Source of the DNA: Salpingoeca rosetta | Taxonomy: Eukaryota > Protista > Choanoflagellata | NCBI GenBank assembly: GCA_033442325.1 | Contig: JAWQFM010000033.1 | Location: 606,540-630,775 of the forward strand | Direction: 5' to 3' | DNA length: 24,236 nt | Part shown: positions 1 to 24,236 of the stretch, piece by piece | How the letters are laid out: every line of letters starts with the position of its first letter | Position numbering within the stretch: the first letter of the stretch is position 1 | Translations under genes and position numbers: made by a program | The notes under the pieces: model-generated | Databases searched by the model: none | Told to the model about the DNA's origin: nothing | Seen by the model: only the letters and a program-made list of their open reading frames with translations

Positions 1-582
1 CATTACTTTGTGCATCTGACAGCATGATGGGAGTAAAAGTGGCCATGGATTAGTTGCGGATGACAGCAGCAACAGCGCCGAGTGGGGGGGGGGCGGAGAG
101 GGCTACACATACACACACAGAGGGACATGAAGGAGATACGCACACACGCACACGCACACACACACACACCGAGACACTTGGTTTCTATTGATCTTTTTGG
201 TTTCTGTCTATCAACGCTTGAGGCCCTTGGGCCGCTCACATAGCATTCAAGCACTCAGTAGCAGACATTCACTCCCTCACATCACCCAGTCACCCACTCA
301 TACAAGCGCCTGTCTGAAATGAGCACACTTTCGGTTTTGATTGCTTCCCTCATCTCTGAGCACTGGGAATGATGTAAGATTTCAACAAATTTTCCCAATT
401 CACGTGTTGGCAAAGATTCGAGGGTGACGTCATTGTCTAATCCTGTTGCGAAGTTCAATTACACCCTCGACCAGTACAACCACCACGAGCCAACCACACG
501 AAGACCACGAAGGGTGGCAAGCACGATCGGTTTCAGGCGGGCTGTGGCGCATCGACGAAGAGGTTGTTGTATGTGCTCTGTG

Positions 583-631
<49 letters not shown>

Positions 632-770
632 GTGTGTGTGTGTGTGTGTGTGTGCAGAGCTGTCGTGTGTCTCTCAGTCTCTGTCTCTTTCATTTTCTAT
701 CCCCGGTCTTCCCCTTCCGTCTCAGTCTCTGTCTCTCTTCGCTTTCTGTCTCTCAGTCTCTGTCTTGCTC

Positions 771-1225
771 TTTCTGTTTCGCGCGCTTTATCTCCCCCGC
801 GCGCTCTATGTCTCCTTCTCGCTCATTCGGTCATCTCTTGGAGTGATTGAGCACACACTGGTGTCTTGTGTTGTCTGTGGCCGTGTGTCGACCCTGGCGT
901 TTGTTGTTGTCGTCGATTCCCGCCTTCCTCACTTTCTTTCTACTTTGTCCACATCCTTGTCTCGCGCTGCTGTTCACACACACACACACTCTCTCCCCCT
1001 GTCTTCCTGTGTGTGTCTCTCTCTCTCTCTGTTTCTGTTTCTCTTTCTGTTTCGCGCGCTCTCTCTTTCGCGCGCGCTCTATCTCCCTCGCACGCGCTCT
1101 ATCTCTTCTTCTTGCTTATGCGATCATCCCTTGGAGTGATTGAGCACACACTTGTGTCTTGTGTCGTCTGTGCCCGTGTGTCGACACTGGCGTGCTTGCC
1201 CTTGTCGATTCCCGCCTTCCTCGTT
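771..1225 (+). repeat. Diverged direct duplication (offset ~293 nt) in the 5' region of the left arm
   Basis: gagtgattgagcacacac...gtcgattcccgccttcctc occurs at 841 and at 1134. The right arm has a single copy (~23360-23530). Confidence 0.85.
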
Positions 1226-1443
1226 TTCTTTCCACACCGTCTGTGTTACTGTGTTTCCCACTCTTTGCATCCTGTGCGGAAGAACAGAGAGAGAGTGTGT
1301 GTGTGTGTTGATGCGTGTATGTGTATGTGCATATCTCTGTGTGGTGCATCTTCACTTCACACACAACCTCAGTGTGGCTCACGTTCCTGTTTACCTGTGC
1401 CTTTGTGCCCGCCTTTGTCTTGGCCCAGTCCTGTTCTGACACC

Positions 1444-4400
1444 ATGTCCGGCAGCATGAGCTCTGCGACATTCAACGCAGTACGTACAAAGGAATGCGAC
1501 CATGCTGCTGTGTTGCACGTTCACTTGGCCACAGCACACACACACACACACACTCCCCTGCCCATTGCATCTCATTCAAACACAACACAACATGTTCCTT
1601 GCTTTCTGCCTGCTCTGTGCGTGTCGTGCCTTGAATCGTGTGCTGTTGCACATAAGCAGGCCTCAAGGGTAAGCGGAAACAGCAGGTGTTCATGGTCTGT
1701 CGAGTACAAGCTGGATTGCATGATACACGTGTTCGTCCTGCCAGCAGAAGCAGACCAGCATCACGATCGTCGCCACCACAGCGCAACCACCATCACAGCG
1801 CCGTTATCATTTCTCCTCTGCAACACAGCTGCTTGTGTGTGTGTGTGTGTGTGTGTGTTTGTGTAGTGTTTGCATTCACCCTCTGTGCTCACCCACACTC
1901 TCTGCCCAACCCCTTTCAACCACCACAACGCCGTTCTGTCGACACCAGCTGGCTTCACGCAGCAGCCAGGTACGGCAACCACCGACCACAGTCACCACAG
2001 ACAGCAACAACCATCGCAGCCACCAGCCACCACCACCACAGCGCCGTTATCATTTCTCCGCTGCTACACAGCTGCTTGTGTGTGTGTGTATGTGTGTGTG
2101 AAGTTTGCATTCACCCTCTGTGCTCACTCACACTCTCTGCCCAACCCCTTTCAACCACCACAACGCCGTTCTGTCGACACCAGCAGGCTTCACGCAACAG
2201 CGTGGTACGTCAACCACCGACCACAGTCACCACAGACAGCAACAACCATCGCAGCCACCAACCATCACCACAGTGCAACCACCACCACCACCACCATCAC
2301 GGTGCAATCACCACAACACGTGCTGTGATTTCGGCTTCCGCCACGATGTTCTAGGATGTTGCTCATACCCGCACCCACCTCATGTTCTCGTGCATAATAT
2401 CCACCCCCGTCTTTTCTTTTCAGAGAGACTTGAAGCGAACTGAAACCCGCGTGGCCTCCAAGGTTCTGCAATTGCGCATGCACAAGCACACATTGACACA
2501 GCACTGCCTTACGATGCAGCAACCGAATCCCCCACCCCCTCACCCCCCCGCCACAGACCGGTATCACCTCTTACCCCACCCTCACAACACCACCGTCATG
2601 CACAGGCGTCCATCATAACGGAGGCAGCCACGCAGTTTGCAACCATTACGCAGTTGCAAGTATGCGCGCAGCAGCAAGGCGGCAGCAGCAGCAGCAGCAG
2701 CAGCAGCAGGGAAGATGACGTGCTCCATCTGCTGGAGAGATGGGCCCTGAATGAAGACAGTTCAGAGTACGTCAAAATGCAGTGCGTGTTGCGAGAACTG
2801 GAAGATGACTTGCAGGCCGCACAACAACAGCTTGCCGCTTTAAAGGCGGGACATGACGAGATCAGGGCGGTGCATGCGCAGGCACAGGTGGAGAGGATGA
2901 AGGCGGAGGTGGAGAGGGTGAAGCGCGATGCCGAGCAAGTGAAGGAGGACGAAGACCTATTCAAGAAACGCATCAATGACAAGAAAGGCGAGATCGGCAA
3001 TGCACGGCATGAAAGATTGAGGGCAGAACTGACAGGACCCGGCAACGAAGAAGCGGTTGCAGCGGCGGAGACGAAGGTGAAAGAGAAAGAGCGGGAATTG
3101 GCCGTGCTTGAGGAACAAAAGAAGATATGGCGCAAGCAGATGGAGGAGGAGAGGAAGAACGGAGAGGAAGAGAGGAAGAAGTGGCAGCAACAGCAGCAGC
3201 AACACAAAGTGTGGGTGCGCGCGTTGACGACATTGCTGCAGGCGGCAGGTGAGCCGCTGCCACACACCACAAGTGCCGAGCACCTGTGGACTGTGGTGTC
3301 GCAGGTGGTGGACGACGCCCTGGCGACAGCGTGGGAGGCCGGCCTTGTGCCCGCTGCTGGCCCGCCCCGACTGGCCACTATCACTTTATCTGCTCTCCAA
3401 GCTATCGAGAAGCGCGTTGCGGAGAAGAAGATCAGCTCACCTGCCGCGATCAGAGACGGTATGCTGTCATCCACCTCTTTGTGTGTTGTCGTGCGGATGT
3501 GGTGATGAAGACGGCCCTGCTTGTTTTGGTTGTCTTGATGACACAAGGTCAAGCGTGCACCTGTTTGCGCCTGTGTGTGTGTGATGTTTTGCGTTGATGT
3601 CACACAGCGCACAACACGTTTGCTTGTATCGTCGTTGCCTTTGTCACTGCTACTGCCACTGTAATTATCGCTGCCTTTGTCACTGTGTCGCAGTTACTGT
3701 CGTTGGCATTTGCATTGGTAGCCTCCACCACCATAGTCACGCATGCGACACATTCACGCTTGTTTTGACACCTCTCCGCCCCTCATGCGCGCTGATTGCA
3801 CTGCTGTGTGTGTGTGTGTGCGTGCAGAATTCTTCTTCACGACGCCACCCAGCAGCATCACCAAGCCCGAGAAGAACCCGTATCTCGTCTACTGGCCGGA
3901 CAATGCCCAGTTCTTCACCGACATATGGCGAGAGCCACTCGCAAAACAGGTGCTGCAATGCAATGACATCCGTCGCCGCTGCGCTGTGTGTGCGGGCGGT
4001 GCTGGTGGAACAGTAGTGCTGTGCTCATTTCTGTGAACGTGCATGTGCGTGTGTTTGTGCGAGCGAGAATATATGAGTGCGACTGTGTGCTTGTGTGTGT
4101 GTGTGTGTGTGTCATGTGCTTGGTGGCATTATCATCACCACCCATCACTAAACGACGTACCGCCATATGTGCACTCCTCCCTATGCCTCTCACCAACCGC
4201 TCGTCCCGCACGCCTTTGTGTCAACACACTCGTGTGTATGTGCATGTGTGCGTGTGTGCATGCGTGCTTGTTTTCGCGTTTCCAGTTTGAGCTGAAGGCT
4301 GATGACATCACGCCGCAAGCAGTGATTGCAAAGATTCACGAAATACCAGTGCTGGAGGTGTCCAGCAGCCGTGGGCCCCGCCCCAGGGGGCGCCAAGTGA

Positions 4401-4647
4401 CGCTTGGCCTGCGACAAGGTAAGGACGTGGCGAAGACTGTTGTTGCCTGTGTTTGCACTGCTTTCAGTTTTAGGTGCACGTGCAGACACGTGTACTTGGC
4501 CTTGGAGCGTTTGTCAACGTCGTCATCATCATGTGGTGTTTGGTCGTGTATTGCCGATGTGTGCGCAAGCGCACATGAAGGGTTGTGATGTGAGATGTGA
4601 TGTGACACCATCGTGCAATGCGTGCACGCTTACATCTCACCCCTGCC

Positions 4648-4695
<48 letters not shown>

Positions 4696-5687
4696 GCTTG
4701 CTCGCAGGTCTGCCTTTGCCAAAAGCACTGCCAACAGGATGGTCCAACGAAGCGGAGATGTGCACCGATATCGCCGAGCACCTTCGCGCCACGGCTGCGC
4801 ACCTCGACCCTGGTGTCACGTTCCCGAGTGAGGTCCCAATCATGACGTACGTTGTGCGGTGCATGTTGTGTCCAGGCGTTGGAGGGGTGGGGAGTGGGTG
4901 TTTGCTGTATCCTTGTTTCCGCTCTCTTGCGTGTCCTGTGATGCTTGTGATGCTGCAAATGCCGGTTTCTTACAGGGAACCTGCCCGTGCTCTTGTCGCG
5001 CTTGCCGCCTTGCGTTGGCCAGGTTCAAGCCAGGCACCCGCCCCAAAACAGACATTGTGATGGTGGACCGTCACACAAACACAATAGCGGCCGTATTTGA
5101 GCTCACGCTAGGCGAGGATGCTGACTCGCTTGGCCAGTTGGCAGCGTACGCGCACCACGCGATTGTGGCGAACGTGCACCGCATTGCAGGCGAGCACGTG
5201 CCTCTGGAGGAGCTGCCCCTGCTCGCTGGGCTGGCGATNNNNNNNNNNNNNNNNNNNNNNNNNNNNNNNNNNNNNNNNNNNNNNNNNNNNNNNNNNNNNN
5301 NNNNNNNNNNNNNNNNNNNNNNNNNNNNNNNNNNNNNNNNNNNNNNNNNNNNNNNNNNNNNNNNNNNNNNNNNNNNNNNNNNNNNNNNNNNNNNNNNNNN
5401 NNNNNNNNNNNNNNNNNNNNNNNNNNNNNNNNNNNNNNNNNNNNNNNNNNNNNNNNNNNNNNNCATGAAGCCCCATGTGCTGCACTTCAACCCCGACAGC
5501 GGCAAAGGTGTGTTGTTTGCTGTTTGCTTGTCTGCGTCTGTATGTGCATGTGTGTGCATGCATGTGTGTGTGCATGCATGTGTGGGTGTGTGCATGTGTG
5601 TGTGCCTGCGCCTGTATGTGTGTGTGTGTGTGTGCATGCATGCGCCTGTCTCTCCGCCCCCCTCCCCTCTCTGCCTCTCTCTGCTTC

Positions 5688-5728
<41 letters not shown>

Positions 5729-6642
5729 TTGAAAGGCGGTCACTGTGCAGTGTTGTATGCACAATTGCGCCCGTGCCTGTGCTCGTGTGTGGTGTGATTC
5801 ACATGATGCTGGTTGTGCTTATCGCTGTGCTGTCAGCAGAGACACCGAAAGTGCTCAGTTCCGTCGCCAACAAAGGAAGCGGATACGTGTGCAAGTTCAT
5901 CAAGACTGGGCACCGTGCTGGCGACTTGCGTGCTGAAGAGATTGAAAACATGTGGAAGTACGTCAACGGGCAACGCGCTTGCAGTCGCATCCCCGCCACC
6001 AACAGCACCGCCACCACCAACAGCAAGAGCAGCACCACGAACACCGCCACCAGCAACATCATCATCAGCAGTGGCAACGGCACGCAGATGATTGCGGTGC
6101 CCCACCTCGGGTCGACCCGCACTCACATTCACGAACAGCACGTCGCGCAGCTCTGCAACAGCTTGTTTCTCCTGTCAGCGGCTGGTCTCGTTCACCATGA
6201 CATTCGCTGTGCCAACGTGGTCGTGAGCGGCGACAAAGCCTCTCTGATCGACTTCGAACTGTCTGGCTGCGACGCCGATGTCATGAAGGCAGCCAAACTC
6301 AAGCCGGCTGAGGTTGCTCTTCGTACGGACCTGCCTGAGCGGTCAGCACACATCCGTGCAGCTGGTGACGAGCGAGTGAAACGCCACATCGAGGATGACT
6401 GGATTGCCATGTTCTACGTGTGCGTTCTCCGGTCTGCGCTCTACAAGAGGGCACCGCAGATGGCACACAGGGCAACCAAGGACGCCATGCTGGCCGCGTT
6501 GGAACAGCTCGAACAACAGCAGCAGCAGCAGCAGGGGAAGGGGAAGCAAGGGGAGAAGGAGAAGCAGCAGGGTCATGTCGTGCTGGTCGGGATGAACCCG
6601 CGCTGCCGCAGTCGTGTGATTTGCTGGGCCGCATCAAGAAGG
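1444..6642 (+). CDS. Coiled-coil + REase-like + atypical kinase protein (CR-effector-like), left copy; 3' end lost in the N gap
   Basis: Exons: 1444-1479, 1660-1668, 1949-1969, 2184-2204, 2424-2462, 2606-3458, 3828-3949, 4286-4418, 4708-4846, 5023-5507 (spans the gap), 5837-(6642+). Splice sites match the right copy, as do the exon lengths 122, 133, 139 and 485. The same motifs are present (TDIVMV..FELT..GQLAAY; HHDIRCAN..IDFE). There is a 1-nt deletion relative to the right copy at ~6600, close to the contig end. Confidence 0.7.
1787..2273 (+). repeat. Direct tandem duplication (offset ~235 nt) containing a candidate 21-nt micro-exon
   Basis: cacagcgccgttatcatttctc...tttgcattcaccctctgtgctca...gtcgacaccag...ggtacg.caaccaccgaccacagtcaccacagacagcaacaacc occurs twice. 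The right arm has one copy (~22520-22775). Confidence 0.9.
5239..5463. other. Assembly gap (225 N) inside the REase-like exon of the left copy
   Basis: N run; its length equals the corresponding right-arm segment (19045-19269). Confidence 0.99.
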
Positions 6643-6742
6643 NNNNNNNNNNNNNNNNNNNNNNNNNNNNNNNNNNNNNNNNNNNNNNNNNNNNNNNNNN
6701 NNNNNNNNNNNNNNNNNNNNNNNNNNNNNNNNNNNNNNNNNN
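6643..6742. other. Assembly gap (100 N, probably of nominal length) covering the stop codon of the left copy
   Basis: N run of exactly 100 bases. Confidence 0.99.
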
Positions 6743-6895
6743 GTGTGTGTGTGCATGTGTGTGCATGTGCGTGATTGATTGTAATTGCGCGGGGAGTGCA
6801 TGTCTACACGTGTAAGGGAGGGAGAGAGAGGGGGGGGGGAAAGACGTGTGGAGGACAGTGTGTTTGCGTGCATGTGCATGTGCACACGATGCTGT

Positions 6896-6945
6896 TCTTT
6901 GCTTTGCTTTGCTTTGCTTTGCTTTGCTTTGCTTTGCTTTGCTTT
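6896..6945 (+). repeat. (GCTTT)n pentanucleotide repeat in the 3' flank; a shorter inverted counterpart lies at ~17645-17673
   Basis: Seen directly. The copy number differs between the arms. Confidence 0.9.
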
Positions 6946-7484
6946 CTTACACGTCCATATGTGTCTGCAATACACTGCATAAGCTACACAGTGATGTATG
7001 TGATCACGAATAGCGCTTTGCGGTGAACAGAGCACAGAAATGGAATGTGTGTGTGTGCGGATGTGAGGGATGTGTGTGTGTGTGTGTGTGTGCGTGTATG
7101 TGTTTGAAGGACTGTTCTATTGACTGTCAGTCTGCCGTTCTGCGTTGTCGCATTGTCGTTGTCGTTGTCGGTGATGAGAAGTGATGTGAACAACCACTCG
7201 ACCACGCTGATGTTGATGGTCGGCGTCACAGTCACTTGTGCTTGACAAGGGAATGGTTGCGTTGTGATTGTTAACGAGTGGCTTCCCAGCACTGCCTCTG
7301 CTGCACCGCTCGTTGACACGGGTGCCCTGGTCGTGAGGGTCGTCGGTGGGCGATTGAAGTATTGGTTGTGTGTGCCTGTGTGCGGTGGTGGTGGTGAGGA
7401 ACGTGTCGTGTCACAACGTCACCATGCTGGGTGAGAGACAGGCGTTGCATTCATTGCTGAGAAATTTTATGTTGACTGGGAAGG

Positions 7485-8324
7485 ATGATGATGATGAGAC
7501 GCAGGATGATGGTGGTGGCGGTGGTACAACTGCTCGTGTTGATGTGTTGCGGTGTGGCGGCGTCGCATGTGTCTTCTGGTAGGAAGGCGTCCATCTTCTT
7601 TCTGCTCACGGATGACCAAGACGTCGACATGGGCTTTGTGTCCCAGCCCAAGCTCGTCAGCCTGTGGCAGAAGCAAGGCGGTGTGTGTGTGTGTTCGTGC
7701 GTGTGTGTGTGTGTGTGTGCGTGTGTATGAGAGAGTGTGTGTGCGTGTGCATGTGCGTGTGTATGAGAGTGAGTGTGTGTGTGTGTATGAGAGAGAGTGT
7801 GTGCGTGTGCATGTGCGTGTGTATGAGAGAGTGTGTGTGTGTCTGTGTGTGTGTGTGTTTGCAGCTGTAGCTGAGGCTATGTCAAGCTGTATGTCAAGCT
7901 GTATGTCAAGCTGTATTGTGGTGTGTCTGCATGCGTTTGAATATGTATTTCTACTTCATGTCTGTGTACCTATCTGTCCACCCGTGCGCCTGTCCGCTTG
8001 CCACGCACTTGCGCACTGCCGTCCTCCCTTCCTCCCCCCCCCCCCATCCACGGGGCTGCCGGACGTCAAGGCTGGCCCTGCCTCTTTTTCTCTGTGCACA
8101 GTCTGACACACCACTGGCCTGCTCCTGCGTTGCCCTTGCAGCCACATTGGAAGCAGCCTTTGCCAGCACACCTGTGTGTTGTCCTTCACGCGCAGGCATC
8201 CAGACGGGAAGGTACATCCACAACGTCCCCATGACCAACAACTCCATCCCGGGCAATTGTTCCAGCACTGCGTGGCAGCAAGGCGCCGAGAGGCACAACA
8301 TCGGCCACCTCATGAAACAAGCCG

Positions 8325-8414
<90 letters not shown>

Positions 8415-8635
8415 ATGTGTGTATGCAAGAGAGGGATTGCGTTGCCTTGCAGCCACATTGGAAGCAGCCTTTGCCAGCACACCTGTGTGTTGTCCTTCAC
8501 GCGCAGGCATCCAGACGGGAAGGTACATCCACAACGTCCCCATGACCAACAACTCCATCCCGGGCAATTGTTCCAGCACTGCGTGGCAGCAAGGCGCCGA
8601 GAGGCACAACATCGGCCACCTCATGAAACAAGCCG

Positions 8636-8721
<86 letters not shown>

Positions 8722-11007
8722 ATGTGTATTCGAGGGAGGGAGTGCGCGCGCTCCCTCTATCTGTGTATGTGCCTGTCTTTCTGTGTCTCTCTCTGCATGT
8801 GCTTGTCGTTGTTTGTGGTGCTTGCTCCCTGTTCAGTGGCCTCTTGCAGCTGCAGTTGTGTCCTTTCATCGCTGGCACTGCCCCACACGGCACCTCTCAC
8901 TTGCAGGTTACACAACAATGTACACGGGCAAATACTTGAACCAGTACGTGCATCGTGGCACGCGTATCGTTGACACGCGCACGACCGACAGTGTTTCGTT
9001 GCTGCATGTATGATGGATTCACGCACACGAACGCAGCCACGTACATACACGCATTCAAAGATACACATACACACGCATACATACACGCACATACACACGC
9101 ACACTCATACTCACATACACGCACATACATACACATTCACATGCACACGTGCGATTGTCTTGGGTGCAGATACGGTGCACCGAGTGCCGGTGGTGTGCAG
9201 CATGTTCCTCGCGGATGGGACAACTGGCAAGCACGTAAGCTCGTCATGTACGCGCATGCGTGTGCGTGTGTGGTCATGTGCACATGCGTGTACATGCGTG
9301 AACATGCTCGTGTGTGTATGTGTACTCGTGTGTGTATGCATCGCTGTATCGATGTGAAAATGTGTGTGTGTGTGAACGCGCCGTGCATGCTGGTTTCCAG
9401 CCTGGCAGTGGTTATGCTCCCAGTTCATGTACCGCCTTGCTGTCCATGTATGTATGTATGTATGTATGTATGTATGTATGTATGTATGTATGTATGTATG
9501 TATGTATGCATGTATGTATGTATGTGTGTATGTATGTATGTATGTATGTATGTATGTATGTATGTATGTATATATGTATGTATGTCTGTGCAGTTGTCGG
9601 CAACAGCGTGTACTACGACTACGTGATCTCCAACAACGGAACCCCGGAGTCACACGGCAACACGTACCTGCCAAACGTATGTGACACGTCCGTGAGTGGC
9701 GCGCGTGCTTGTGAACTTGTGCGTGCGTATGCACTTGTACGTGCGTGTGTGTGCACTTGAACGTGCGTGCGTGTGCGTGTGTGTATGTGTTTGTGTGTGT
9801 GCGTGAGTGTTGTCATTTTGCTTTGTCTGTAAGCCTACTGCTGTTGCTCCACCTGGACACGCCGCCACGCTGCGTGCTCCTTGATCCTATGCGTCACACC
9901 ACGCACACCACCACCACCACCACTCCCCGCACACCGCTGGCATGCCGTGGCAGCTGCTGTTGGACAAGACATCCGATTTCCTGCGGACACTGGAAGGGAC
10001 TGATGACCCCTTCTTCATCATGGTTGGCACTCCGTCATGCCACGACCCCACAGAGCCTGCACCAGAATATGCGCACCTCCTGCCAAACGCAACTGCCCCG
10101 CGCCCGCCAAACTACGGTCAGCAGCTGCTGTGCCTTTGTGTCTCTGTGTATGTGTGTGTGTTTCTGTGCATATGTGTGTGTGTATGCATGTTTCTGTGTA
10201 TATGTGTGTTTCTGTGCATATGTGTGTATTTGTGTGCGTGTAGTTGTGTTTCTGTTTCTGTTTCTGTTTCTGTGTGTTTCTGTTTGTGTGTGTGTGTGTG
10301 TTCGTCCGTGTGCTCCGTTGAAAGGACTGTCTCGCACTGCGCCCCCTGTTGCTGCTTGCAGGCAAGGCGTTTCGAGACAAGCACTGGTTTGTTGCAAAGC
10401 AAGGAGAGGTCGCAGGTTTTGGATCAGGTAGACAGACATGGCACATGCAATTGCGTTTATTGCCAGACACACGCACTCACACGTGCCACACGTTCACTCA
10501 CACGCACTCACTCACTCACTCACTCACTCACACGCACACACTCACTCACTCACTCACTCACTCACTCACCTTCGACGTGTGTTCTGGCACGACGCGCGCT
10601 GCTTTTGCATGTTGATTGCGCCTGTCATACGGCAAAGGGTATGCGCCAATCGAGGAGAAGTACAATGATCTGCAGTACCGCCGACGCGCCCTCACGCTCA
10701 TGACTGTTGATGACATCGTCGCAAACGTCACAGCGTACGCCAATGCCTCGTGCACTCGTGGCCTAAGTTGTTTATGTTGTTTAAGTTGTTGTTGTTGGTT
10801 TTAAGTTGTTGTTTAAGTTGTTGGTTGTAAGTTGTTGTAAGTTGTTGTTGTTGTTGTTGTTGTTTCAGTAGTTGTTGTTGTTTTAGTTGTTGTTGTTGTT
10901 GTTGTTGTTTCAGTAGTTGTTGTTGTTTAAGTTGTTGTTGTTGTTTATGTTGTTGTTGTTGTTTTAAGTTGTTGTTGTTGTTTAAGTTGTTGTTGTTGTT
11001 GTTTAAG

Positions 11008-11044
<37 letters not shown>

Positions 11045-12195: not shown

Positions 12196-12249
<54 letters not shown>

Positions 12250-13807
12250 ATGCGTGCGTGCTTGCGTGTGTATGTGATCTCAGCTTGGCTGGCGAGATGC
12301 AGTGTTTGCGAGAGCCTGCATCCGAGCACACATGCCTGTGCCCTCGCGTTTGGGTGGTGGTGCTGGAAGCGAAATGCCTGCCCTTGTTCGAGTGGCCTGC
12401 CTGGCAGTTACAGTCTCACCCCATTGCCACACCTTCACAATGCATCAAGATCCCAGACACGATGGATGGCGTCAGCATGCTCCCAGTTCTCACCGGCCAA
12501 GAGGTGTGCCCATGTGTGTGTGTGTGTGTGTGTGCTGTTCACTGTGTTTGCTGTGTTTACTGTGTTGATTTATTTATTTATTTATTTGTTTGTTTGTTTG
12601 TTTGTTTGTTTGTTTGTTTGTTTGTTTGTTTGTTTGGCTATCTCTGTGTTTGGCTGTCTCTGTCTCCGTCAACCTTTTGTACCATGGCGACACTTTTTCA
12701 TCCGTCACACTCTTCCCTTCTCGTTCCTAACTCTCTCCCTTCTGCACACCGCACTCCGTTGCACCCCACCCCAACCCCACCCATTCTCCCTCGCCCTCTG
12801 TCCCCCAACCGAAACTTCAGGCTGATGTGCGAACGGACTTCCTCGTTGAGTATCACGGGGAGGGGCAGCCGCCGTCAAGCCAGCGGCTGCCATGCCTCGT
12901 CCCAGATATGTCATGCATGCTGGTGCGTGCTCACTCGCTCGCTCGCTCGTGCGTGGGCTCGTTTGCATTCGCACGTGCTCAACCCTGTTCCTTGTGGGTG
13001 AATCCCTTTTTTCTTTCGCCCGTTTGCATGTGCGCTTCCTGCACATGTTGTGTGTGGTTGGGTGTATATGTGTGTGCATCATCGTGTGTGTGTGTATGTG
13101 TGTGTGTACATCATTGTGCATGTGCATACATGTACATGATTCCTTGTTAACTGCTCACATCACACCCCCTGATGCGGCTGCTGCTTCCACTCAGGTTGGT
13201 CCTGAGATGGAGATGCATCCACCGCGATGGCCGCACGCGCCAATCTGCAGCTGCCAAGATGCACACAACAACACATACGAGTGTGTGCGAACACTTGACC
13301 GCCAGAGTCAGTAGATGCATGGGTGTAGTGTGTGTGTGTGTGTGTGTGTTTGGGGGTGATGTGGATTGAGCGAGGACCTATGCGTGGGTTGTTTGCTTTG
13401 GCACAATAGCACAGCATGTTTGATTGCCTGCCAGAGTGTCCTATACGCACCCAATCGCTTGAATATTCCTTTCTATTTTCACTCACTCACTGGCACGTAA
13501 CATCTGTTGCTATCGCACGCATGCACGCACACATATGTGTGTCCATCCGCCCGCACTCTTCCTCATTACCCTGCGCCCGCTCCCCCGCTGCGTTCAAGAT
13601 GGACTGAACACGCTGTACTGCGAGATGGAGTCTGGATTCAGGGAATTCTACAACATCACAGGCGACCCACATCAGCTGGTGAATGCCATTAACACGACAG
13701 AACCAACGCTCATCGCACAACTGGCTCGCCGCTTGCACGCTCTCAAGCAATGCAAGGGCCCTTCGTGTCGTCAGAGACACACAGCACAGCACAACCCAAC
13801 GTCTTAA
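7485..13807 (+). CDS. GNS: N-acetylglucosamine-6-sulfatase (GNS-like, family S1 formylglycine sulfatase), multi-exon, with a hydrophobic signal-like N-terminus
   Basis: Exon 1 (7485-7680) has a hydrophobic leader and [10 protein letters not shown]. The exon at 8142-8324 (duplicated at 8453-8635) has the CxPxR signature [18 protein letters not shown]. Later exons give [161 protein letters not shown] and CKGPSC, with TAA at 13805-13807. These motifs are collinear with vertebrate GNS as I recall it. Confidence 0.92.
8127..8726 (+). repeat. Tandem duplication (period 311 nt) of the sulfatase catalytic exon plus the adjacent (GT)n tract
   Basis: 8142-8324 and 8453-8635 read as identical 183-nt exons. 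Each has a ttgcag acceptor and a gtgcgt donor and is followed by a long (GT)n run and ttgcatgtgt. Confidence 0.93.
9446..9585 (+). repeat. (TATG)n microsatellite in a GNS intron, directly upstream of an acceptor
   Basis: Seen directly in the sequence. Confidence 0.95.
10495..10569 (+). repeat. (CTCA)n microsatellite, intronic
   Basis: Seen directly in the sequence. Confidence 0.9.
10765..11043 (+). repeat. (GTT)n microsatellite interrupted by TTAA/TCAGTA, in a GNS intron
   Basis: Seen directly. It generates the spurious poly-Leu ORF at 10969. Confidence 0.95.
12568..12635 (+). repeat. (TTTA)n(TTTG)n compound microsatellite, intronic
   Basis: Seen directly in the sequence. Confidence 0.9.
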
Positions 13808-14390
13808 GCTCCTTACCATGTGTGTGAATATGTGTGCTTTCCTTTTTGTCGTCGTTGTTGTTTCATTTTCGTGTACAGATGTCTCTGAATCCAGGCTGTG
13901 TTGTTCAAGGTGTTACCCCCCCCCCTACCTGCGGTGCATTGACTGTGGGGCAGTTGAGCGGCTTGAACTACCCCCGACTCGCGCACGTGCTACTGACCGA
14001 CACCCAGTATCTTTGGTGCAACCGTTAAACAAAGTACAACAGAGAATTCAGGGAATTCAGATGCAATCTCAGGTACTGGGATGTCTCTCATGTCCCTCGC
14101 AGTTTCCTCCATGAGGCTCTCGAGGCAGGCATTGCTGTTCTCTCCCAAACGCATCATTGTGTGCAAAAGGGTGTCCTTGTAATAGTATAATATCCTATTT
14201 CAAGGCGTTTTTGCCTGAAGTCAGTCTGTCAGTTAGGTTTATTTTTGCCCAACACACGCAAAGTCGTTACAGAGACGAAACAGGCAAGATGGTGCTGCTG
14301 TTGTGGCCGTGGGGTGTTTGACACATCGGAATGACCAGTGTGCTGAGCAAGCTGAAATGAGCAAGCAACCTCACATCCGACTGTCTGGTG

Positions 14391-14444
<54 letters not shown>

Positions 14445-14493
14445 ACACGCTGTGTTGTTTTTGTTTTGCAGCGTGAAGACTTGAGCTTGAACC

Positions 14494-15486
14494 ATGGCAG
14501 TGAACGTGCACGCGACGAGCGTCAACACAGGCGCATTCTCCCGCAATGACATGATCGAGTGGGTGAATGACTTGCTCAAGCTCAGCTACACCAAGGTTGA
14601 GAACCTCTGCACAGGTACGTACAGCATTCGTTCAACTGCCTCTCCAAACGCGTGTGTGTGTGTGCGTGTGTGCGTGTGTGCATGCATTTTGGGCTTCTCT
14701 TCGTGTAATGTACTTTCCTTTTGCCGCACTGCTTGAACTCTAACATCGTCGCTCATTCACACACCCATGGCCATGCTTAGGCGCAGCGTACTGTCAGCTG
14801 ATGGATATGCTGTGGCCAGGCCTGGTGAACTTGAAGAAGGTCAAGTTTGACGCCAAGCACGACTACGAGTTTATCGAGAACTTCAAGATCCTTCAGGTGG
14901 GTTCACCTGATGCGGTAACGCTGTTGGCAGCCGGCAACTGCCTCATGTGCCATAACCATGCCCGTGTAGTTGTGGTTGCTGACTGCTGCTGCTGCTGCTG
15001 CTTGTCTTCATGTCACCACAGTCGACGTTCAAGAAGAAGAAGGTGGACAAGGAGATCCCTGTGGAGCGTTTGGTCAAAGGCCGCTTCCAGGACAACTTTG
15101 AGTTTGGCCAATGGTTCAAGAAGGTACAGTAGTGGGCGTTTGTACTTGGCTTGTTTGAAATGTGTGGTGTGTGGTTGCGTGCATGGGTATTCGTGCTTGC
15201 GCATGTGAGTATGTTTGCACACGAGTGTTTTGCCTGCATGAACTACAAAGCATGGCATCTCTATCACGCACTGACACGTGTGTGTGTGTGTGTGTTTGTA
15301 TGTGTGTGTGTGTGTGTGTTGACCAGTTCTTCGATGCAAACTACGGCGGTCACGACTACAACCCCGAGGACAGGCGTGCCGGCAAGAAGGTTGCCGCCCC
15401 ACCCTCCCTCAACGAACCTCCCAAGAAAGGACGCACAAAGCGTATGATGTCCTTGCGTCACGTGGTGTGTGTGTGTGTGGTTGTGT

Positions 15487-15547
<61 letters not shown>

Positions 15548-15986
15548 CCACAGCCTTGTCGGACATATCCACCACCATCATGACCATCACATCCACCACC
15601 ACCAACACTGCTACCACGACCGACATGATCACCACCACGATCACGGCTAGCGTCGGGGATGAAGGCGCAGTCGACAGGTGCAACGACCGCTGCTTCCGGC
15701 CGCACGCGCGCTGCTGGCAAGACACCAACAGGAGCATCATCATCTTCAGCAACAACAACAACGCCGAGGAAGGGTGGTGGTGGCGCCTCGTCATCGTCGT
15801 CCAATGCCGCCGTTGCTGCGGAGCTGAAGGAGAAGAACATTGAGATTGAGCAGCTGAAGGCCGAGGTCATATATGAACGTTGCTGCTGCTGCTGTTGGCG
15901 TGGGAGGGGAGTGTGATTGACTGCGGTTATGGAACTGGTTGTTTTGCTCTTTGAGGATCTATCCGTCTGCGCCTTTCACGAACGTA

Positions 15987-16036
<50 letters not shown>

Positions 16037-16443
16037 CTCTCTCTCGTACACGCGTGCTTGCATACATGCAGCGGGAGCAACTGCTGCTGACGATCAACGG
16101 CCTGGAGAAAGAGCGTGACTTCTACTTTGGAAAACTCAGACAGCTCGAGGTGAACACGATACGCACAGCCGTGGACAGAACCAAAGCTCATCACACACGC
16201 ACTTGCACATACACACGCACACAGTCTCTCTTTGCAAGTGTACTGTTTGCTCGTTTGATTCATGCGCACACACACACACACTCTCTCTCTCGCTCACCTG
16301 CGCGTGGCGGTTGTTTTGACTGTCAGGTTGAGTGCCAGGAGGGGACGGAGACGCTTCCTGTGGAGCACATCCTGAGCGTCCTTTACGAGACGGCCGAGGG
16401 TTTTGTGCAGCCAGAGAGCGATGACGAGGAACAGCACAGCTGA
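14494..16443 (+). CDS. EB1: Microtubule end-binding protein EB1 (MAPRE family), 7 exons, 287 aa
   Basis: Exons: 14494-14614, 14781-14896, 15022-15123, 15327-15441, 15651-15865, 16072-16149, 16327-16443 (864 nt, in frame). CH domain: [62 protein letters not shown]. This is followed by an S/T-rich linker and the EBH domain [29 protein letters not shown]. Confidence 0.96.
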
Positions 16444-16924
16444 GCTGCACATCCCTGTCCATCAAACCTTCTTCCAACACATACACACACACGCGCGCGC
16501 GCGCGAACACACATACACGTACACATACATGCATTTACATATACTGCGTACGCACACGCACATACACAAGCGCATGCACACACATGCGTTCCGTTTATTC
16601 TTGCCGATTTGTGTGTTGTGATGGTGGGTGCGCATGCGTGTGTATGTGCGTGGTGGCCCGCTTGCCACGGCTTTCTGTTGGTTGTGCTGTTTCCGTGCTG
16701 TTGTTCCAGAAAGCACACGTGTCCCTCCGTACACCCTTGCTGTGTTTGTTTGCGGTCACATGCCCTGTCCCGTAGCACGTGGTGCTTTGTCTGTTGCCCA
16801 TGCTTATGTCGTTGTGTCGTGTGTTTATTCCTCCATCTTCGTTCGAACGTGCAATAGAAACCTACAACGCAGCTGTTGTGATTTGAACATGCGCGCGTGT
16901 GTGTGTGAATGTGTGAATGTGAGT

Positions 16925-17038
16925 GAAAACTGGTTGAGATCTTACACCATTCTCAGCGCTCAGAGATGGGGAAGCAATCAAAAGCAAGCATAAAGGAAAC
17001 GGTGTGTACAAGCGTACGAACAAGTGCTTGAACGCGTG
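16925..17038 (-). repeat. Third, diverged copy of the arm 5'-region motif
   Basis: 16925-16983 aligns to 23943-24002 in the same orientation (53 of 60 positions by hand) and to the rc of 335-394. Weaker similarity continues to ~17038 (acaagtgcttgaacgcgtg vs acaggcgcttgcacgagtg). Confidence 0.85.
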
Positions 17039-17147
17039 CCTTCTATCTATCGGCGCCCGAGACGGCTTTTCCCAAGCATAAATACACACCAACGGCTGTC
17101 TCTCACTCAGCATGGTGACGTTGTGACACGTCCTTCACCACCACCAC

Positions 17148-17202
<55 letters not shown>

Positions 17203-17824
17203 CCCATGCTTCAATCGCCCACCGACGACCCTCACGACCAGGGCACCCGTGTCAACGAGCGGTGCAGCAGAGGCGGTGCTGGGAAGCCACTCGTTAACAA
17301 TCACAACCCAACCATTCCCTTGTCAAGCACAAGTGACTGTGACGCCGACCATCAACATCAGTGTGGTCGAATGGTTGTTCACATCACTTCTCATCACCGA
17401 CAACGACAACGACAATGCGACAACGCAGAACGGCAGACTGACAGTCAATAGAACAGTCTTTCAAACATGCACGCAAGCACACGCACATGCACACACACAC
17501 ACGCATCCCTCTCATCCCTCTCATCCCTCACATCCACACACACACATTCCATTTCTGTGCTCTGTTCACCGCAAAGCGCTATTCGTGATCACATACATCA
17601 CTGTAGCTTATGCAGTGTATTGCAGACACATATGGACGTGTAAGAAAGCAAAGCAAAGCAAAGCAAAGCAAAGAACAGCATCGTGTGCACATGCGCATGC
17701 ACGCAAAGCAAACACACTGTCCTCCACACGTCCCTCCCTCTCTCTCTCCCTCCCTTACACGTGTAGACATGCACTCCCCGCGCAATTACAATCAATCACG
17801 TACATGCACACACATGCACACGCA

Positions 17825-17861
<37 letters not shown>

Positions 17862-17903
17862 ACACATGGCTTCCTTTCTCCCAAGCGCGCGATCACGTCG
17901 AGC

Positions 17904-19812
17904 TCAGTCGTACAGCGGGATCTCCTTGATGATGTTCTTGATGCGGCCCAGCAAATCACACGACTGCGGGAGCTGCGAGCTCATCCCGACCAGCACCAAA
18001 TGACCCTGCTGCTTCTCCTCCTTCTCCTGCTCCCCCTTCCACTGCTGCTGCTGCCCCTGTTGCTGCTGCTGCTGCTGCTGCTCGAGCTGTTTCAACGCGG
18101 CCAGCATGGCGTCCTTGGTTGCCCTGTGTGCCCTCTGCGGTGCACTCTTGTAGAGCGCAGACCGGAGAGTGCACACGTAAAGCAGGGCGATCCAGTCATC
18201 CTCGATGTGGCGTTTCACTCGCTCGTCACCAGCTGCACGGATGTGTGCTGACCGCTCAGGCAGGTCCGTACGAAGAGCAACCTCAGCCGGCTTGAGTTTG
18301 GCCGCCTCCATGACATCGGCGTCGCAGCCAGCCAGTTCGAAGTCGATAAGAGAGGCTTTGTCGCCGCTCACGACCACGTTGGCACAGCGAATGTCATGGT
18401 GAACGAGACCAGCCGCTGACAGGAGAAACAAGCTGTTGCAGAGCTGCGCGACGTGCTGTTCGTGAATGTGAGCGCGGGTCGACCCGAGGTGGGGCACCGC
18501 AATCATCTGCGTGCCATTGCCACTGCCACTGCCACTGCTGCTGCTGGTGGTGTTGGTGGTGCTGCTCTTGCTGTTGGTGGCGGGGATGCGACTGCAAGCG
18601 CGTTGCCCGTTGACATACTTCCACATGTTTTCAATCTCTTCAGCACGCAAGTCGCCAGCACGGTGCCCAGTCTTGATGAACTTGCACACGTATCCGCTTC
18701 CTTTGTTGGCGACGGAACTGAGCACTTTCGGTGCCTCTGCTGACAGCACAGCGATAAGCACAACCAGCATCATGTGAATCACACCACACACGAGCACAGG
18801 CACGGGCGCAATGGTGCATACAACGCTGCATAGCGACCGCCTTTCAACCACACACAACCACACACAAACAAAAACAGAAGCAGAGAGGCAGAGAGGGAGA
18901 GAGAGGAGAGGATCGTGCACACGCACATATGCATACACGCACACATGCATACGCACACATGCACATACAGACGCAGACAAGCAAACAGCAAACAACACAC
19001 CTTTGCCGCTGTCGGGGTTGAAGTGCAGCACATGGGGCTTCATGACATTCAACGCAAAGTCGCTGCCATGCTCAATGTTCTGCTTGATGGCGTGGGCGTA
19101 CTTTGCGTGGAGGAAGTCCGCAAAGCAGGAAATGGCCATAGCAGCCTGCCCAATGTTCGTCATCGGAATGGAGATGATGTTGTGGGCGACCAGCTTCACG
19201 ACTCCACCGGCGTTGGCCACCATAAACTCAACAACGGTGGTCTGCACCGGGCTGACACGCAGCCCAAACATCGCCAGCCCAGCGAGCAGGGGCAGCTCCT
19301 CCAGAGGCACGTGCTCGCCTGCAATGCGGTGCACGTTCGCCACAATCGCGTGGTGTGCGTACGCTGCCAACTGGCCAAGCGAGTCAGCATCCTCGCCTAG
19401 CGTGAGCTCAAACACGGCCACTTTTGTGTTTGTGCGACCATCCACCATCACAATGTCTGTTTTGGGGCGGGTGCCTGGCTTGAACCTGGCCAACGCAAGG
19501 CGGCAAGCGCGACAAGAGCACGGGCACGTTCCCTGTAAGAAGTTGGCATTCGCAGCACCACAAGCAGCACAGGGCACGCAAGAGAGCGGGAACAAGGATA
19601 CAGCAAACACCCACTCCCCACCCCTCCAACGCCTGGACACAACATGCACCGCACAACGTACGTCATGATTGGGACCTCACTCGGGAACGCGACACCAGGG
19701 TCGAGGTGCGCAGCCGTGGCGCGAAGGTGCTCGGCGATATCGGTGCACATCTCCGCTTCGTTGGACCATCCTGTTGGCAGTGCTTTTGGCAAAGGCAGAC
19801 CTGCGAGCAAGC

Positions 19813-19857
<45 letters not shown>

Positions 19858-22800
19858 GTGTGTGTGTGTATAGGCAGGGGTGAGATGTAAGCGTGCACGC
19901 ATTGCACAATGGTGTCACAATCACATCTCACATCACAACCCTTCATGTGCGCTTGCGCACACATCGGCAATACACGACCAAACACCACATGATGATGACG
20001 ACGTTGACAAACGCTCCAAGGCCAAGTACACGTGTCTGCACGTGCACCTAAAACTGAAAGCAGTGCAAACACAGGCAACACTAGTCTTCGCCACGTCCTT
20101 ACCTTGTCGCAGGCCAAGCGTCACTTGGCGCCCCCTGGGGCGGGGCCCACGGCTGCTGGACACCTCCAGCACTGGTATTTCGTGAATCTTTGCAATCACT
20201 GCTTGCGGCGTGATGTCATCAGCCTTCAGCTCAAACTGGAAACGCGAAAACAAGCACGCATGCACACACGCACACATGCACATACACACGAGTGTGTTGA
20301 CACAAAGGTGTGCGGGACGAGCGGTTGATGAGAGGCATGGGGAGAAGTGCACATATGGCGGCACGTCGTTTAGTGATGGGTGGTGATGATAATGCCACCA
20401 AGCACATGACACACACACACACACACACACACAAGCACACAGTCGCACTCATATATTCTCGCTCGCACAAACACACGCACATGCACGTTTACAGAAATGA
20501 GCCCAGCACTACTGTTCCACCAGCACCGCCCGCACACACAGCGCAGCGGCGACGGATGTCATTGCATTGCAGCACCTGTTTTGCGAGTGGCTCTCGCCAT
20601 ATGTCGGTGAAGAACTGGGCATTGTCCGGCCAGTAGACGAGATACGGGTTCTTCTCGGGCTTGGTGATGCTGCTGGGTGGCGTCGTGAAGAAGAATTCTG
20701 CACGCACACACACACACACACAGCAGTGCAATCAGCGCGCATGAGGGGCGGAGAGGTGTCAAAACAAGCGTGAATGTGTCGCATGCGTGACTATGGTGGT
20801 GGAGGCTACCAATGCAAATGCCAACGACAGTAACTGTGACACAGTGACAAAGGCAGCGATAATTACAGTGGCAGTGGCAGTGGCAGTGACAACGACGATA
20901 CAAGCAAACGTGTTGTGCGCTGTGTGACATCAACGCAAAACGTCATGCACATACAAACACACGCGCAAACAAGTGCACACATGTCCGTGTGTCATCAAGA
21001 CAACCAAAACAAGCAGGGCCGTCTTCACCACCACATCCGCACGAAAACACACAAAGAGGTGGATGACAGCATACCGTCTCTGATCTCGGCAGGTGAGCTG
21101 ATCTTCTTCTCCGCAACGCGCTTCTCGATATCTTGGAGAGCAGATAAAGTGATAGTGGCCAGTCGGGGCGGGCCAGCAGCGGGCACAAGGCCGGCCTCCC
21201 ACGCTGTCGCCAGGGCGTCGTCCACCACCTGTGACACCACAGTCCACAGGTGCTCGGCACTTGTGGTGTGTGGCAGCGGCTCACCTGCCACCTGCAGCAA
21301 TGTCGTCAACGCGCGCACCCACACTTTGTGTTGCTGTTGCTGCCACTTCTTCCTCCATTCTTCTTCATCCCTCCTCCTCTCTTCTTCTTCTCTCATCCGT
21401 TTTTCTTCTTCCCCTGTGCTCTCGTCTTCATCCCTCATCCTCTTTTCTTCTTCCCTCATCCTTTCTTCTTCTTCCCTCACCCTCTCTTCTTCATCCCTCA
21501 CCCTCTCCTCTTCATCCCTCACCTTCTCCTCTTCATCCCTCATCCTTTCTTCTTCATTCTCCTTGATGATTTCCTCCATTCGTCTGCGCAGCTTATCACG
21601 CTGCACCAGCAGCGTGGCAAGCTGTTCCTCCAACTGAGTCACCTTCCTCTCTGCCGCTGTAATTGCCTGTTGGTCGGTCGGCAATGCCACACCAGCTTCG
21701 GCCTGTGCTTGCGTGAGCTCATTTCTCTTGTCCCCGATCCGCTGTGCATTCACGTTGCTCGCCTCCTGGATGCGTTGCTGTCTGTCGTGTCTGTCGCGCA
21801 TGCGTTGCTGCCTGTCGCGCATGCGTTGCTGCCTGTCGCGCATGCGTTGCTGCCTGTGCTGTTGCTGCTTCACTCGCTCAGCATCGCGCTTCACCCTCTC
21901 CACCTCCGCCATCATCCTCTCCATCTGCTCCCGCGCAAGAGCCGCCCAGACCTTGTCATGCTCCGCCTGTGCAGCCGCAAGCTGTTGTTGTGCGGCCCGC
22001 ACACCCTCTTCCTTCTCCTCCAATACGTGCTGTAATCTGTCAATCATTGAGCTGCACTCATCCAGGGTCCATCTTTCCAGCAGATAGAGCATGTCGTCCA
22101 TCCTGCTGCTGCTGCTGTTGCCGCTGCTGCCTTGCTGCTGCGCGCATTCTTCTTGCAACTGCGTGATGGTCGCAAACCGCGCGGCTGCCTCCGTTATGAT
22201 GGACGCCTGTGCATAACGGTGGTGTTGTGAGGGTGGGGTAAGAGGTGATACCAGTCTGTGGCGGGGGGTGTGAGGGGGTGGGGGATTCGGTTGCTGCATC
22301 GCAAGGCAGTGCTGTGTCAATGTGCTTTTGTGCATGCGCAATTGCAGAACCTTGGAGGCCACGCGGGTTTCAGTTCGCTTCAAGTCTCTCTGAAAAGAAA
22401 AGACGGGGGTGGATATTATGCACGAGAACATGAGGTGGGTGCGGGTATGAGCAAGATCGTGGCGGAAGCCGAAATCACAGCACGTGTTGTGGTGATTGCA
22501 CCGTGGTGGTGGTAGTGGTGGTGGTTGCACTGTGGTGATGGTTGGTGGCTGCGGTTGTTGTGGTGGTTGTTGCTGTCTGTGGTGACTGTGGTCGGTGGTT
22601 GACGTACCACGCTGTTGCGTGAAGCCTGCTGGTGTCGACAGAACGGCGTTGTGGTGGTTGAAAGGGGTTGGGCAGAGAGTGTGGGTGAGCACAGAGGGTG
22701 AATGCAAACATCACACACACACACACACACAAGCAACCGTATAGCAGCGGAGCAATGATAACGGCGCTGTGATGGTGGTTGCACTGTGACGGCGAAGATA

Positions 22801-23140
22801 GTGATGCCGGTCTGCTTCTGCTGGCAGGACGAACACGTGTATCATGCAATCCAGCTTGTACTCGACAGACCATGAACACCTGCTGTTTCCGCTTACCCTT
22901 GAGGCCTGCTTTGTGCAACAGCACACTATTCAAGGAACGACAGGCACAGAGCAAACAGAAAGCAAAGAACATGTTGTGTTGTGTTTGAATGAGATCTTGA
23001 GATGCACTGGGCAGGGGAGGGAGTGCGTGTGTGTGTGTGTGTGTGTGTGCTGTGGCCAAGTGAACACGCAACACAGCAGCATGGTCGCATTCCTTTGTAC
23101 GTACTGCGTTGAATGTCGCAGAGCTCATGCTGCCGGACAT
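17904..23140 (-). CDS. Coiled-coil + PD-(D/E)xK REase-like + atypical kinase protein (Crinkler/RHS CR-effector-like), right copy, ~983 aa
   Basis: Hand-built exons on the - strand: 23140-23105 (MSGSMSSATFNA), 22905-22897 (ASR), 22628-22608 (QASRNSV), 22389-22351 (RDLKRTETRVASK), 22206-21075 (coiled-coil), 20697-20576, 20235-20103, 19800-19662, 19485-19001, 18739-17904. All introns are GT-AG and phase-compatible; the total is 2952 nt, in frame to TGA. REase-like motifs: WSNEAEM..IAEHL, FPSEVPI, PKTDIVMV, VAVFELT, LGQLAAY. Kinase motifs: GYVCKFIK, EEIENM, LVHHDIRCANVV, LIDFELAG, DDWIAL. The first four small exons are less certain. A possible further upstream exon is 23821-23753 (MASTRGS...IDEEVV). 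Confidence 0.75.
21346..21560 (-). repeat. Coding 21-nt minisatellite (EEERMRD-like heptads, about 9-10 degenerate units)
   Basis: Translation: EEERMRD EEEKVRD EEERVRD EEERVRE EEERMRE EEKRMRD EDESTGE EEKRMRE EEERRRD EEEWRKK. The left copy has only about two such units. Confidence 0.9.
21791..21857 (-). repeat. Coding 21-nt minisatellite (RQQRMRD x3)
   Basis: Three exact copies of ctgtcgcgcatgcgttgctgc at 21791, 21812 and 21833. It is absent from the left copy. Confidence 0.95.
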
Positions 23141-23660
23141 GGTGTCAGAACAGGACTGGGCCAAGACAAAGGCGGGCACAAAGGCACAGGTAAACAGGAA
23201 CGTGAGCCGCACTGAGGTTGTGTGTGAAGTGAAGATGCACCACACAGAGATATGCACATACACATACACGCATCAACACACACACACACACACTCTCTCT
23301 GTTCTTCCGCACAGGATGCAAAGAGTGGGAAACACAGTAACACAGACGGTGTGGAAAGAAAACGAGGAAGGCGGGAATCGACAACAACAACCAACGTCAG
23401 GGTCGACACACGGGCACAGACGACACAAGACACAAGTGTGTGCTCAATCACTCCAAGGGATGATCGAATGAGCGAGAGAGCAAGATAGAGCGCGTGCGAG
23501 GGAGAGAGCTCGCGAAACAGAAAGACGGAGAAAGCGAGACAGAAAGCGAAAGAGAGACAGAGACTGAGAGACGGAAGGGGAAGGCAGGGGATAGACAATG
23601 AAAGAGAGACTGAGACTGAGAGACACACGACAGCTCTGCACACACACACACACACACACA

Positions 23661-23731
<71 letters not shown>

Positions 23732-24236
23732 CACAGAGCACAGAGCGCATACAACAACCTCTTCGTCGATGCGCCACAGCCCGCCTGACGCCGAATCGAA
23801 GCTGCCTCTCGTGCTTGCCATCCTTCGTGGTTTTCGTGCGGTTGGCTGGTTGGCTCGTGTTGGTTGTACTGGTCAACAGCGAAATTGAATTTCGCGGCGG
23901 GATCACTAAATCACCCTCGAATCTTTTGCAACTTCTTGGGGGGAAAATTTGTTGAAATCTTCCACCATTCCCAGTGCTCAGAGATGAGGGAAGCAATCAA
24001 AACCGAAAGTGTGCTCATTTCAGACAGGCGCTTGCACGAGTGGGTGACTGGGTGATGTGAGGGAGTGAATGTCTGCTACTGAATGCTTGAATGCTATGTG
24101 AGCGGCCCAAAGGCCTCAAGCGTTGACAGACAGAAACCAACAAGATCAATAGAAACCAAGTGTCTCTGTGTGTGTGTGCGTGTGTATGTGTGCGTGTGTG
24201 TATATCTCCTTCGTGTGTGTGTGTGTGTGTGTGTGT

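Follow-up and report, generated by a model that had tools for sequence, protein, structure and literature searches.

The 24,236-nt stretch of the choanoflagellate Salpingoeca rosetta analysed here (hereafter the window; C33:606540-630775, in a genome of 55.4 Mb) forms a 24-kb palindrome that is real in the assembly: two inverted copies of a putative kinase gene stand tail to tail around a spacer that carries a sulfatase gene and an EB1 (microtubule end-binding) gene. We consider that this locus is quite probably the static product of the segmental duplication of a lineage-specific gene, followed by gene conversion throughout its family, and that it is neither switchable nor mobile. An earlier interpretation, made from the letters of the window alone (the sequence-only reading), had proposed that crossovers between the arms would act on the locus as in a shufflon or, alternatively, that the unit resembles a composite transposon.

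Inverted matches were recovered with a repeat finder and by BLASTN of the 24,236-nt window against itself. The inverted high-scoring pairs of the self-BLASTN are colinear, with 84-96% identity, and run from 105-943/24236-23351 inward to 7367-7447/17165-17090. They delimit a left arm (copy C; 105-7447, + strand), a right arm (copy D; 17090-24236, - strand) and a spacer of 9.64 kb (7448-17089). The right arm is ungapped and ends at the contig end, 24236; on the left, the 5' flank common to the family runs on to base 1 of the window, also a contig end. In each arm a gene of 5.2 kb lies between a 5' flank of ~1.1-1.4 kb and a 3' flank of 0.8 kb, and both genes converge on the spacer. In a global alignment of arm against arm the identity is 93.2% at aligned bases (5905 matches, 428 substitutions), and 47 indel events account for 1172 columns. 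Arms that diverge so much are distinct sequences rather than a single one assembled in duplicate, which is what the sequence-only reading had held; its description of inverted arms of ~7.2 kb around a 9.6-kb core is likewise confirmed by the self-BLASTN and by the global alignment.

Only two runs of N lie inside the window, at 5239-5463 (225) and 6643-6742 (100). From 6743 to 24236 it is gap-free; the entire right arm, the spacer and the innermost 705 bp of the left arm fall within this part. Its inverted orientation is thus independent of scaffolding, and the inner arm ends do lie on one ungapped stretch, as had been claimed. Only scaffolding links the left-arm body (1-6642) to the remainder. 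The outer ends were to be sought beyond the window: the flanking sequence was inspected, but it consists on both sides of N, the window being an island between scaffold gaps of 10,871 N on the left and 8,321 N on the right. Since these gaps directly flank the window, both outer arm ends are contig ends, where the outer breakpoints and any terminal inverted repeats (TIR) or target site duplications (TSD) are unread. At the inner ends of homology (7447/17090) the sole feature is a (TG)n tract ~50 bp inside.

The two arms belong to a larger family. According to protein and profile searches, the genome has exactly seven open kinase exons and an equal number of nuclease-like exons, and the genome-wide search for arm copies that the sequence-only reading had suggested gives seven full copies, two of which are the arms, plus one fragment. 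The genes are ~5.2 kb long with 9-11 exons, and the seven proteins (P0001-P0007, 796-908 aa) are named “serine/threonine protein kinase” or “kinase subdomain-containing protein”. Scaffold C33 holds five full copies, in the order A, B and C, all forward, then the spacer, then D and E, both inverted. Copy A (C33 573.6-582.9k) comprises the gene, its 3' flank and sulfatase exons up to the equivalent of window 10893; copies B and E lie at 587.5-595.4k and 639.1-644.7k, and the fragment H, a 5' piece, at 744.6-749.5k of the same scaffold. In copy F (C23:278.8-287.1k) the gene comes with a 2.4-kb upstream spacer and a sulfatase fragment, while copy G (C9:1566.9-1572.2k) has only the gene body, beginning near the start codon and reaching ~100 bp beyond the stop. 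The end points do not coincide among copies A, B, E, F, G and H; shared copy ends, a check for which the sequence-only reading had suggested, are therefore not borne out, the copies stopping at different points. Copy A is 99-100% identical to copy C over window 3108-4625 and 6541-7885, and is closer to it than D is.

Parts of the spacer have followed the copies as well. It is mostly single-copy but not wholly unique, contrary to what had been stated: 7448-7987 recurs at 99-100% identity downstream of copies A and B, and 8438-10893, which contains sulfatase exons, has a 90% copy at C33:582608-585142, downstream of A, a piece of it being present also on C23, upstream of copy F.

On sequence comparison the family appears to be specific to the S. 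rosetta lineage and nearly orphan, the sole outside relatives found being the fragments P0008 and P0009. A weak match to the kinase exon occurs elsewhere in the genome (C7:650789-650986, 37%, E 4e-4). A CT/CA-rich stretch of ~160 bp in the 5' flank (23470-23633, and ~505-770 in the left arm) has ~45 genomic matches at 68-76%, beside (CA)n arrays; it is probably low-complexity sequence rather than a small dispersed repeat.

To follow the relationships along the copies we used sliding windows on an alignment of the eight copies and maximum-likelihood trees of separate blocks. In the sliding windows the nearest relative of each arm shifts along the length of the arm. The block trees, each with 100/100 support, group the copies differently: (B,D,G)|(A,F,C,E) for the coiled-coil cassette (C 2561-3108), (A,C,D,G)|(B,E,F) for the middle block (C 4189-4866) and (C,H)|(A,B,D,F) for the 5' flank. 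This conflict indicates gene conversion or recombination across the whole family, so that the recombination between members assumed in the sequence-only reading is borne out. A Sawyer-type run test was significant for every pair but is confounded by misaligned flanks; we therefore relied on the block trees.

Between the two arms the similarity is uneven. The coiled-coil cassette (2561-3140, + strand) is only 56-84% identical to its counterpart in the right arm (22251-21396); the arms carry opposite cassette types, with exons 2-3 at 58-81% identity. The most similar tract, of ~2 kb, is found at 3250-5238 (+ strand; partner ~21280-19270). There the identity is 96-100%, exons 5-7 are 99-100% identical, and perfect runs reach 226 bp, where an identity of 93% would lead one to expect ~86 bp. 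In this tract copy A is no less close. Conversion is not specific to the two arms. As judged from these alignments and trees, gene conversion or recombination is real and family-wide, including copies in direct orientation and on other scaffolds, and nothing points to a special arm-to-arm process.

No transposase, integrase or recombinase domain was detected by Pfam in the arm genes and in ten other open reading frames (ORFs) of the arms and flanks, in agreement with the earlier remark that no transposase is visible, and no tRNA or Rfam family was found in the window. As to TIR and TSD, copies A, B, E, F, G and H have no termini in common. Nor are the arms those of a homogenised palindrome: C and D are 93.2% identical, while A and C reach 99-100% over long stretches. 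We accordingly rejected the composite transposon, which had been put forward as the alternative (no transposase domain, non-coincident copy ends, one copy reduced to the gene body), and we found nothing in support of the analogy with a shufflon (no recombinase, no defined sites, arms at 93% that are two of seven paralogues). The sequence contains no hint of programmed inversion or of transposition. Inversion of the spacer by homologous crossover is physically possible, one assembly being the basis here, and a crossover between the arms would swap the 5' and 3' halves of the genes, as the sequence-only reading reasoned.

From the observed repeat, the gene family, the differing end points of the duplications, the mosaicism and the absence of mobility genes, we infer an order of events and a stable arrangement. 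A lineage-specific S. rosetta gene would have been amplified locally on scaffold C33, with further copies on C23 and C9. One of the duplications would have been inverted and have stopped ~0.8 kb beyond the stop codon (window ~7447/17090), which would have placed C and D with their 3' ends facing each other and the parental sulfatase and EB1 genes between them. Afterwards, interlocus gene conversion among all members would have made a mosaic of every copy. Several points weigh against this scenario. The outer arm ends are unread, so that terminal repeats or a larger symmetric structure may exist there; the body of the left arm is attached via two scaffold gaps, in a family whose repetitiveness makes mis-scaffolding conceivable; homologous inversion can use a 7-kb inverted repeat of 93-99% identity as its substrate; and a single assembly cannot reveal coexisting orientations.

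This last pair of points bears on an active palindrome, in which arm crossovers would flip the sulfatase-EB1 spacer, exchange the 5' cassette and the 3' nuclease-like/kinase halves of the genes and add to the diversity of the family. The ~2-kb tract with its long perfect runs and the demonstrable mosaicism of the members speak in its favour, but copies in direct orientation and on other scaffolds are equally mosaic, which indicates non-crossover gene conversion. Moreover C has equally close relatives in A and in D, the arms, at 93%, have escaped homogenisation, and recombinase and site motifs are absent; we hold an active palindrome to be unlikely. The more elaborate proposal that the tail-to-tail pair is a working recombination substrate, whose occasional crossovers would flip the spacer and recombine cassette types with nuclease-like/kinase halves, and so diversify a choanoflagellate Crinkler-like conflict family, has in our view a slender chance of being right. 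A different doubt concerns the assembly, which we presume to be the chromosome-scale one described for S. rosetta, obtained by re-scaffolding the 2013 draft with Hi-C (PMC10232365). If only the inner 705 bp of the left arm truly adjoined the core, 1-5238 and 5464-6642 would have been mis-scaffolded from another copy. The two N gaps that join the left arm, the position of the window between gaps of 10.9 and 8.3 kb, and the 99-100% identity of family copies over long stretches would fit such a partial artefact. The gap flanks are nevertheless colinear with the partner arm, and in every other copy (A, B and F on C23) the 3' flank directly follows a gene body, so that a gene copy is expected to the left of 6743 anyway; we find a partial artefact quite improbable. 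Least credible, and in our opinion very improbable indeed, is a mobile unit built like a composite transposon, its nuclease-kinase arms enclosing genes of the host as cargo. It has on its side the inverted arms around a cargo, and the nuclease domains of conflict systems are reportedly derived from transposons. But the arms are intron-bearing cellular genes in which no transposase or integrase domain is seen, the copy ends do not coincide, one copy being gene only, and parts of the “cargo” were duplicated with single arms in direct orientation. A segmental duplication followed by family-wide conversion is the reading that we retain.

The gene of the right arm (17904-23140, - strand) corresponds by exact mapping to the nine exons of the database model P0001, an 878-aa “serine/threonine protein kinase”: 22431-22351, 22206-21874, 21777-21601, 21402-21076, 20698-20576, 20235-20101, 19798-19661, 19484-19002 and 18740-17907. 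The usual start peptide of the family, MSGSMSSATF, is found at 23140-23111, upstream of the start annotated for P0001, and at 1444 in the left arm. “Introns” 2 and 3 of P0001 (21778-21873 and 21403-21600, - strand) are in frame within a 560-aa ORF (21025-22707) and encode further coiled-coil repeats of the ERMRDEEE type; a 21-bp tandem array lies at 21359-21557. These two “introns” may be coding instead of intronic.

The gene of the left arm, placed by exact peptide mapping of the model P0007 (1444-6642, + strand), has exons at 1444-1479, 1745-1834, 1949-1969, 2184-2204, 2424-2462, 2606-3457, 3827-3949, 4286-4420, 4710-4847, 5024-5197 (then the gap) and 5749-6615. Both gaps corrupt this model: past the first one an intron is read as exon, and the C-terminus is aberrant. 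Gap 1 (5239-5463, 225 N) falls within the nuclease-like exon. Its flanks are colinear with the right arm (5238 matches 19270 and 5464 matches 19044), and the right-arm piece thus skipped, 19045-19269, is also 225 bp; as drawn, the frame of exon 5024-5506 is kept from one side of the gap to the other, the unread residues being given as X. The length of an N run being an estimate, continuity and frame are plausible there, short of proof. Gap 2 (6643-6742, 100 N) has a right-arm partner of 108 bp (17827-17934). Because this piece contains the right-arm stop codon (17904-17906), the last ~10 codons and the stop of the left gene are unread, and the start of its 3' flank is hidden as well. A tandem duplication of 235 bp (91% matches) is present at 1786-2271, in the region of the 5' micro-exons of the left arm, and is absent from the right arm.

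For the searches on the encoded proteins we used the database models P0001-P0007 as given, and the exons of the window were searched singly. The family proteins share one layout: a coiled coil, an orphan middle domain, a region with a PD-(D/E)xK-like motif and a stripped-down kinase. None of P0001-P0007 has a Pfam match above the cut-off. The kinase motifs VCKF, HHDIRCAN and DFE are intact in both arms, the catalytic loop HHDIRCAN with the DFG-like DFE being encoded at 18333-18401 (- strand) and, in the left arm, at 6193-6261. Matches below the cut-off fall on this loop throughout: Pfam APH (4e-4 to 5e-3) and, for P0008, Pkinase (1.2e-3); in a profile search of the PDB, PknE (4.7e-3) and then many MAP kinases; and, with HMMER, a bacterial Ser/Thr kinase (1.9e-4). 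The 3' half is thus likely to be a minimal kinase, on sequence support that is weak but consistent.

In the nuclease-like part of both arms the motif is AVFELTLG (19395-19418, - strand; 5090-5113 in the left arm), with T at the position of the E-x-K lysine. This FELT form is found in five of the seven paralogues, both arms included, the lysine being present in copies A and E and in P0009; P0003, P0006 and the foreign P0009 keep the D...E-x-K pattern. When the nuclease-like and kinase region was compared exhaustively by HMMER with 1.84 billion representatives, the only matches outside S. rosetta were the two fragments P0008 and P0009 and the one weak bacterial kinase. P0008 and P0009 are a kinase-like and a nuclease-like piece placed side by side on one 1761-bp ENA environmental contig, at 38-42% identity. 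The two-module unit is thus present in at least one other organism. The profile search with the nuclease-like exon gave P0009 as sole match, and neither Pfam, HMMER-based nor PDB searches linked this part to a known nuclease.

Structure prediction was of little help here. The AlphaFold2 models were unusable, with a predicted local distance difference test (pLDDT) of 39.6 for P0001 (family alignment of 9 sequences) and of 34.1 for the nuclease-like exon; at this low confidence, the P0001 model puts a long helix or coiled coil at the N terminus. In the ESM Atlas, the neighbourhood of residues 380-605 includes fungal clusters (features 0.90-0.92, template modelling score (TM) 0.56-0.64), and PF20147 Crinkler or PF17667 Pkinase_fungal occurs in some of these clusters, a lead only, though in keeping with the sequence-only reading. 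For the middle domain (residues 230-440) the Atlas search gave no convincing neighbour. The Crinkler header PF20147 gave no match in P0001-P0007 at E<=0.1. Of the inward-facing nuclease-kinase genes announced by the sequence-only reading, the convergence, the kinase-like 3' half and the D...E-x-K/T motif upstream of it are found; the nuclease fold is conjectural, and so is a kinship with Crinklers. The names “effector” and “CR-type REase (restriction endonuclease)” found no backing in a Crinkler header, in Pfam, PDB or HMMER links, or in the AlphaFold models. As labels for the arm genes, “nuclease” and “effector” are unproven.

In the spacer, the sulfatase gene (8126-13804, + strand) was read exon by exon. 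Pfam PF00884 (Sulfatase) matches 8107-8970 with E 8.2e-6 and 25.8 bits, against a cut-off of 25, and the active-site pattern C-x-P-S-R is present as CCPSRAG at 8177 and 8488. The EB1 gene (14494-16440, + strand) shows the EB1 C-terminal motif PF03271 above the cut-off (E 3.5e-8) and a CH domain below it (E 3.3e-3). The spacer had been said to hold GNS and EB1: a sulfatase and EB1 are indeed there, and the PDB phmmer search made for the GNS subtype with three sulfatase exon ORFs gave no match. The two active-site motifs belong to a 311-bp tandem unit (99% matches, 8126-8746) that comprises the CCPSR exon and flanking (GT)n. The duplicated exon is 192 nt long and open in both copies, so that splicing of both keeps the frame. 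The sulfatase fragment downstream of paralogue A has a single 311-bp unit. Either the parental gene has a true exon duplication here, or the microsatellite has given rise to an assembly artefact.

A caution follows for the locus as a whole: its striking 24-kb palindrome is a contig island in a poorly assembled cluster of duplications, and its symmetry comes from two adjacent paralogues in opposite orientation. Of more enduring interest is the gene family, which is nearly orphan, amplified, shuffled by conversion and restricted to a close relative of animals.

Among known arrangements, the locus compares best with inverted segmental duplications, or convergent pairs of paralogues, in amplified clusters that undergo interlocus conversion. 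Gene-bearing arms of several kb, a spacer of ordinary genes, a mosaic pattern of identity and microsatellite-rich breakpoints are common to both; there is no essential difference, the present family being lineage-specific. The palindromes of primate sex chromosomes are large and are kept by arm-to-arm gene conversion, with arms more than 99.9% identical. The S. rosetta locus shares with such large palindromes the gene-bearing inverted arms, the spacer and tracts of near-identity, but its arms are at 93%, its left arm is closest to copy A and its cassette types differ. With shufflons and invertible switches the likeness is one of geometry only, i.e. inverted repeats within coding regions, where a crossover would swap halves; in contrast to them, the locus has no site-specific recombinase and no short crossover sites, and presents a eukaryotic spliced gene in diverged arms of 7 kb. 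At the level of the proteins, a nuclease-like module followed by a minimal kinase recalls the Crinkler or CR-type REase-kinase effectors and the fungal FunK1 (PF17667), as does a family that is fast-evolving, amplified and mosaic. The S. rosetta proteins differ from these effectors in having a long N-terminal coiled coil in place of a Crinkler header and no secretion signal discernible by eye, in an organism that is a free-living bacterivore.

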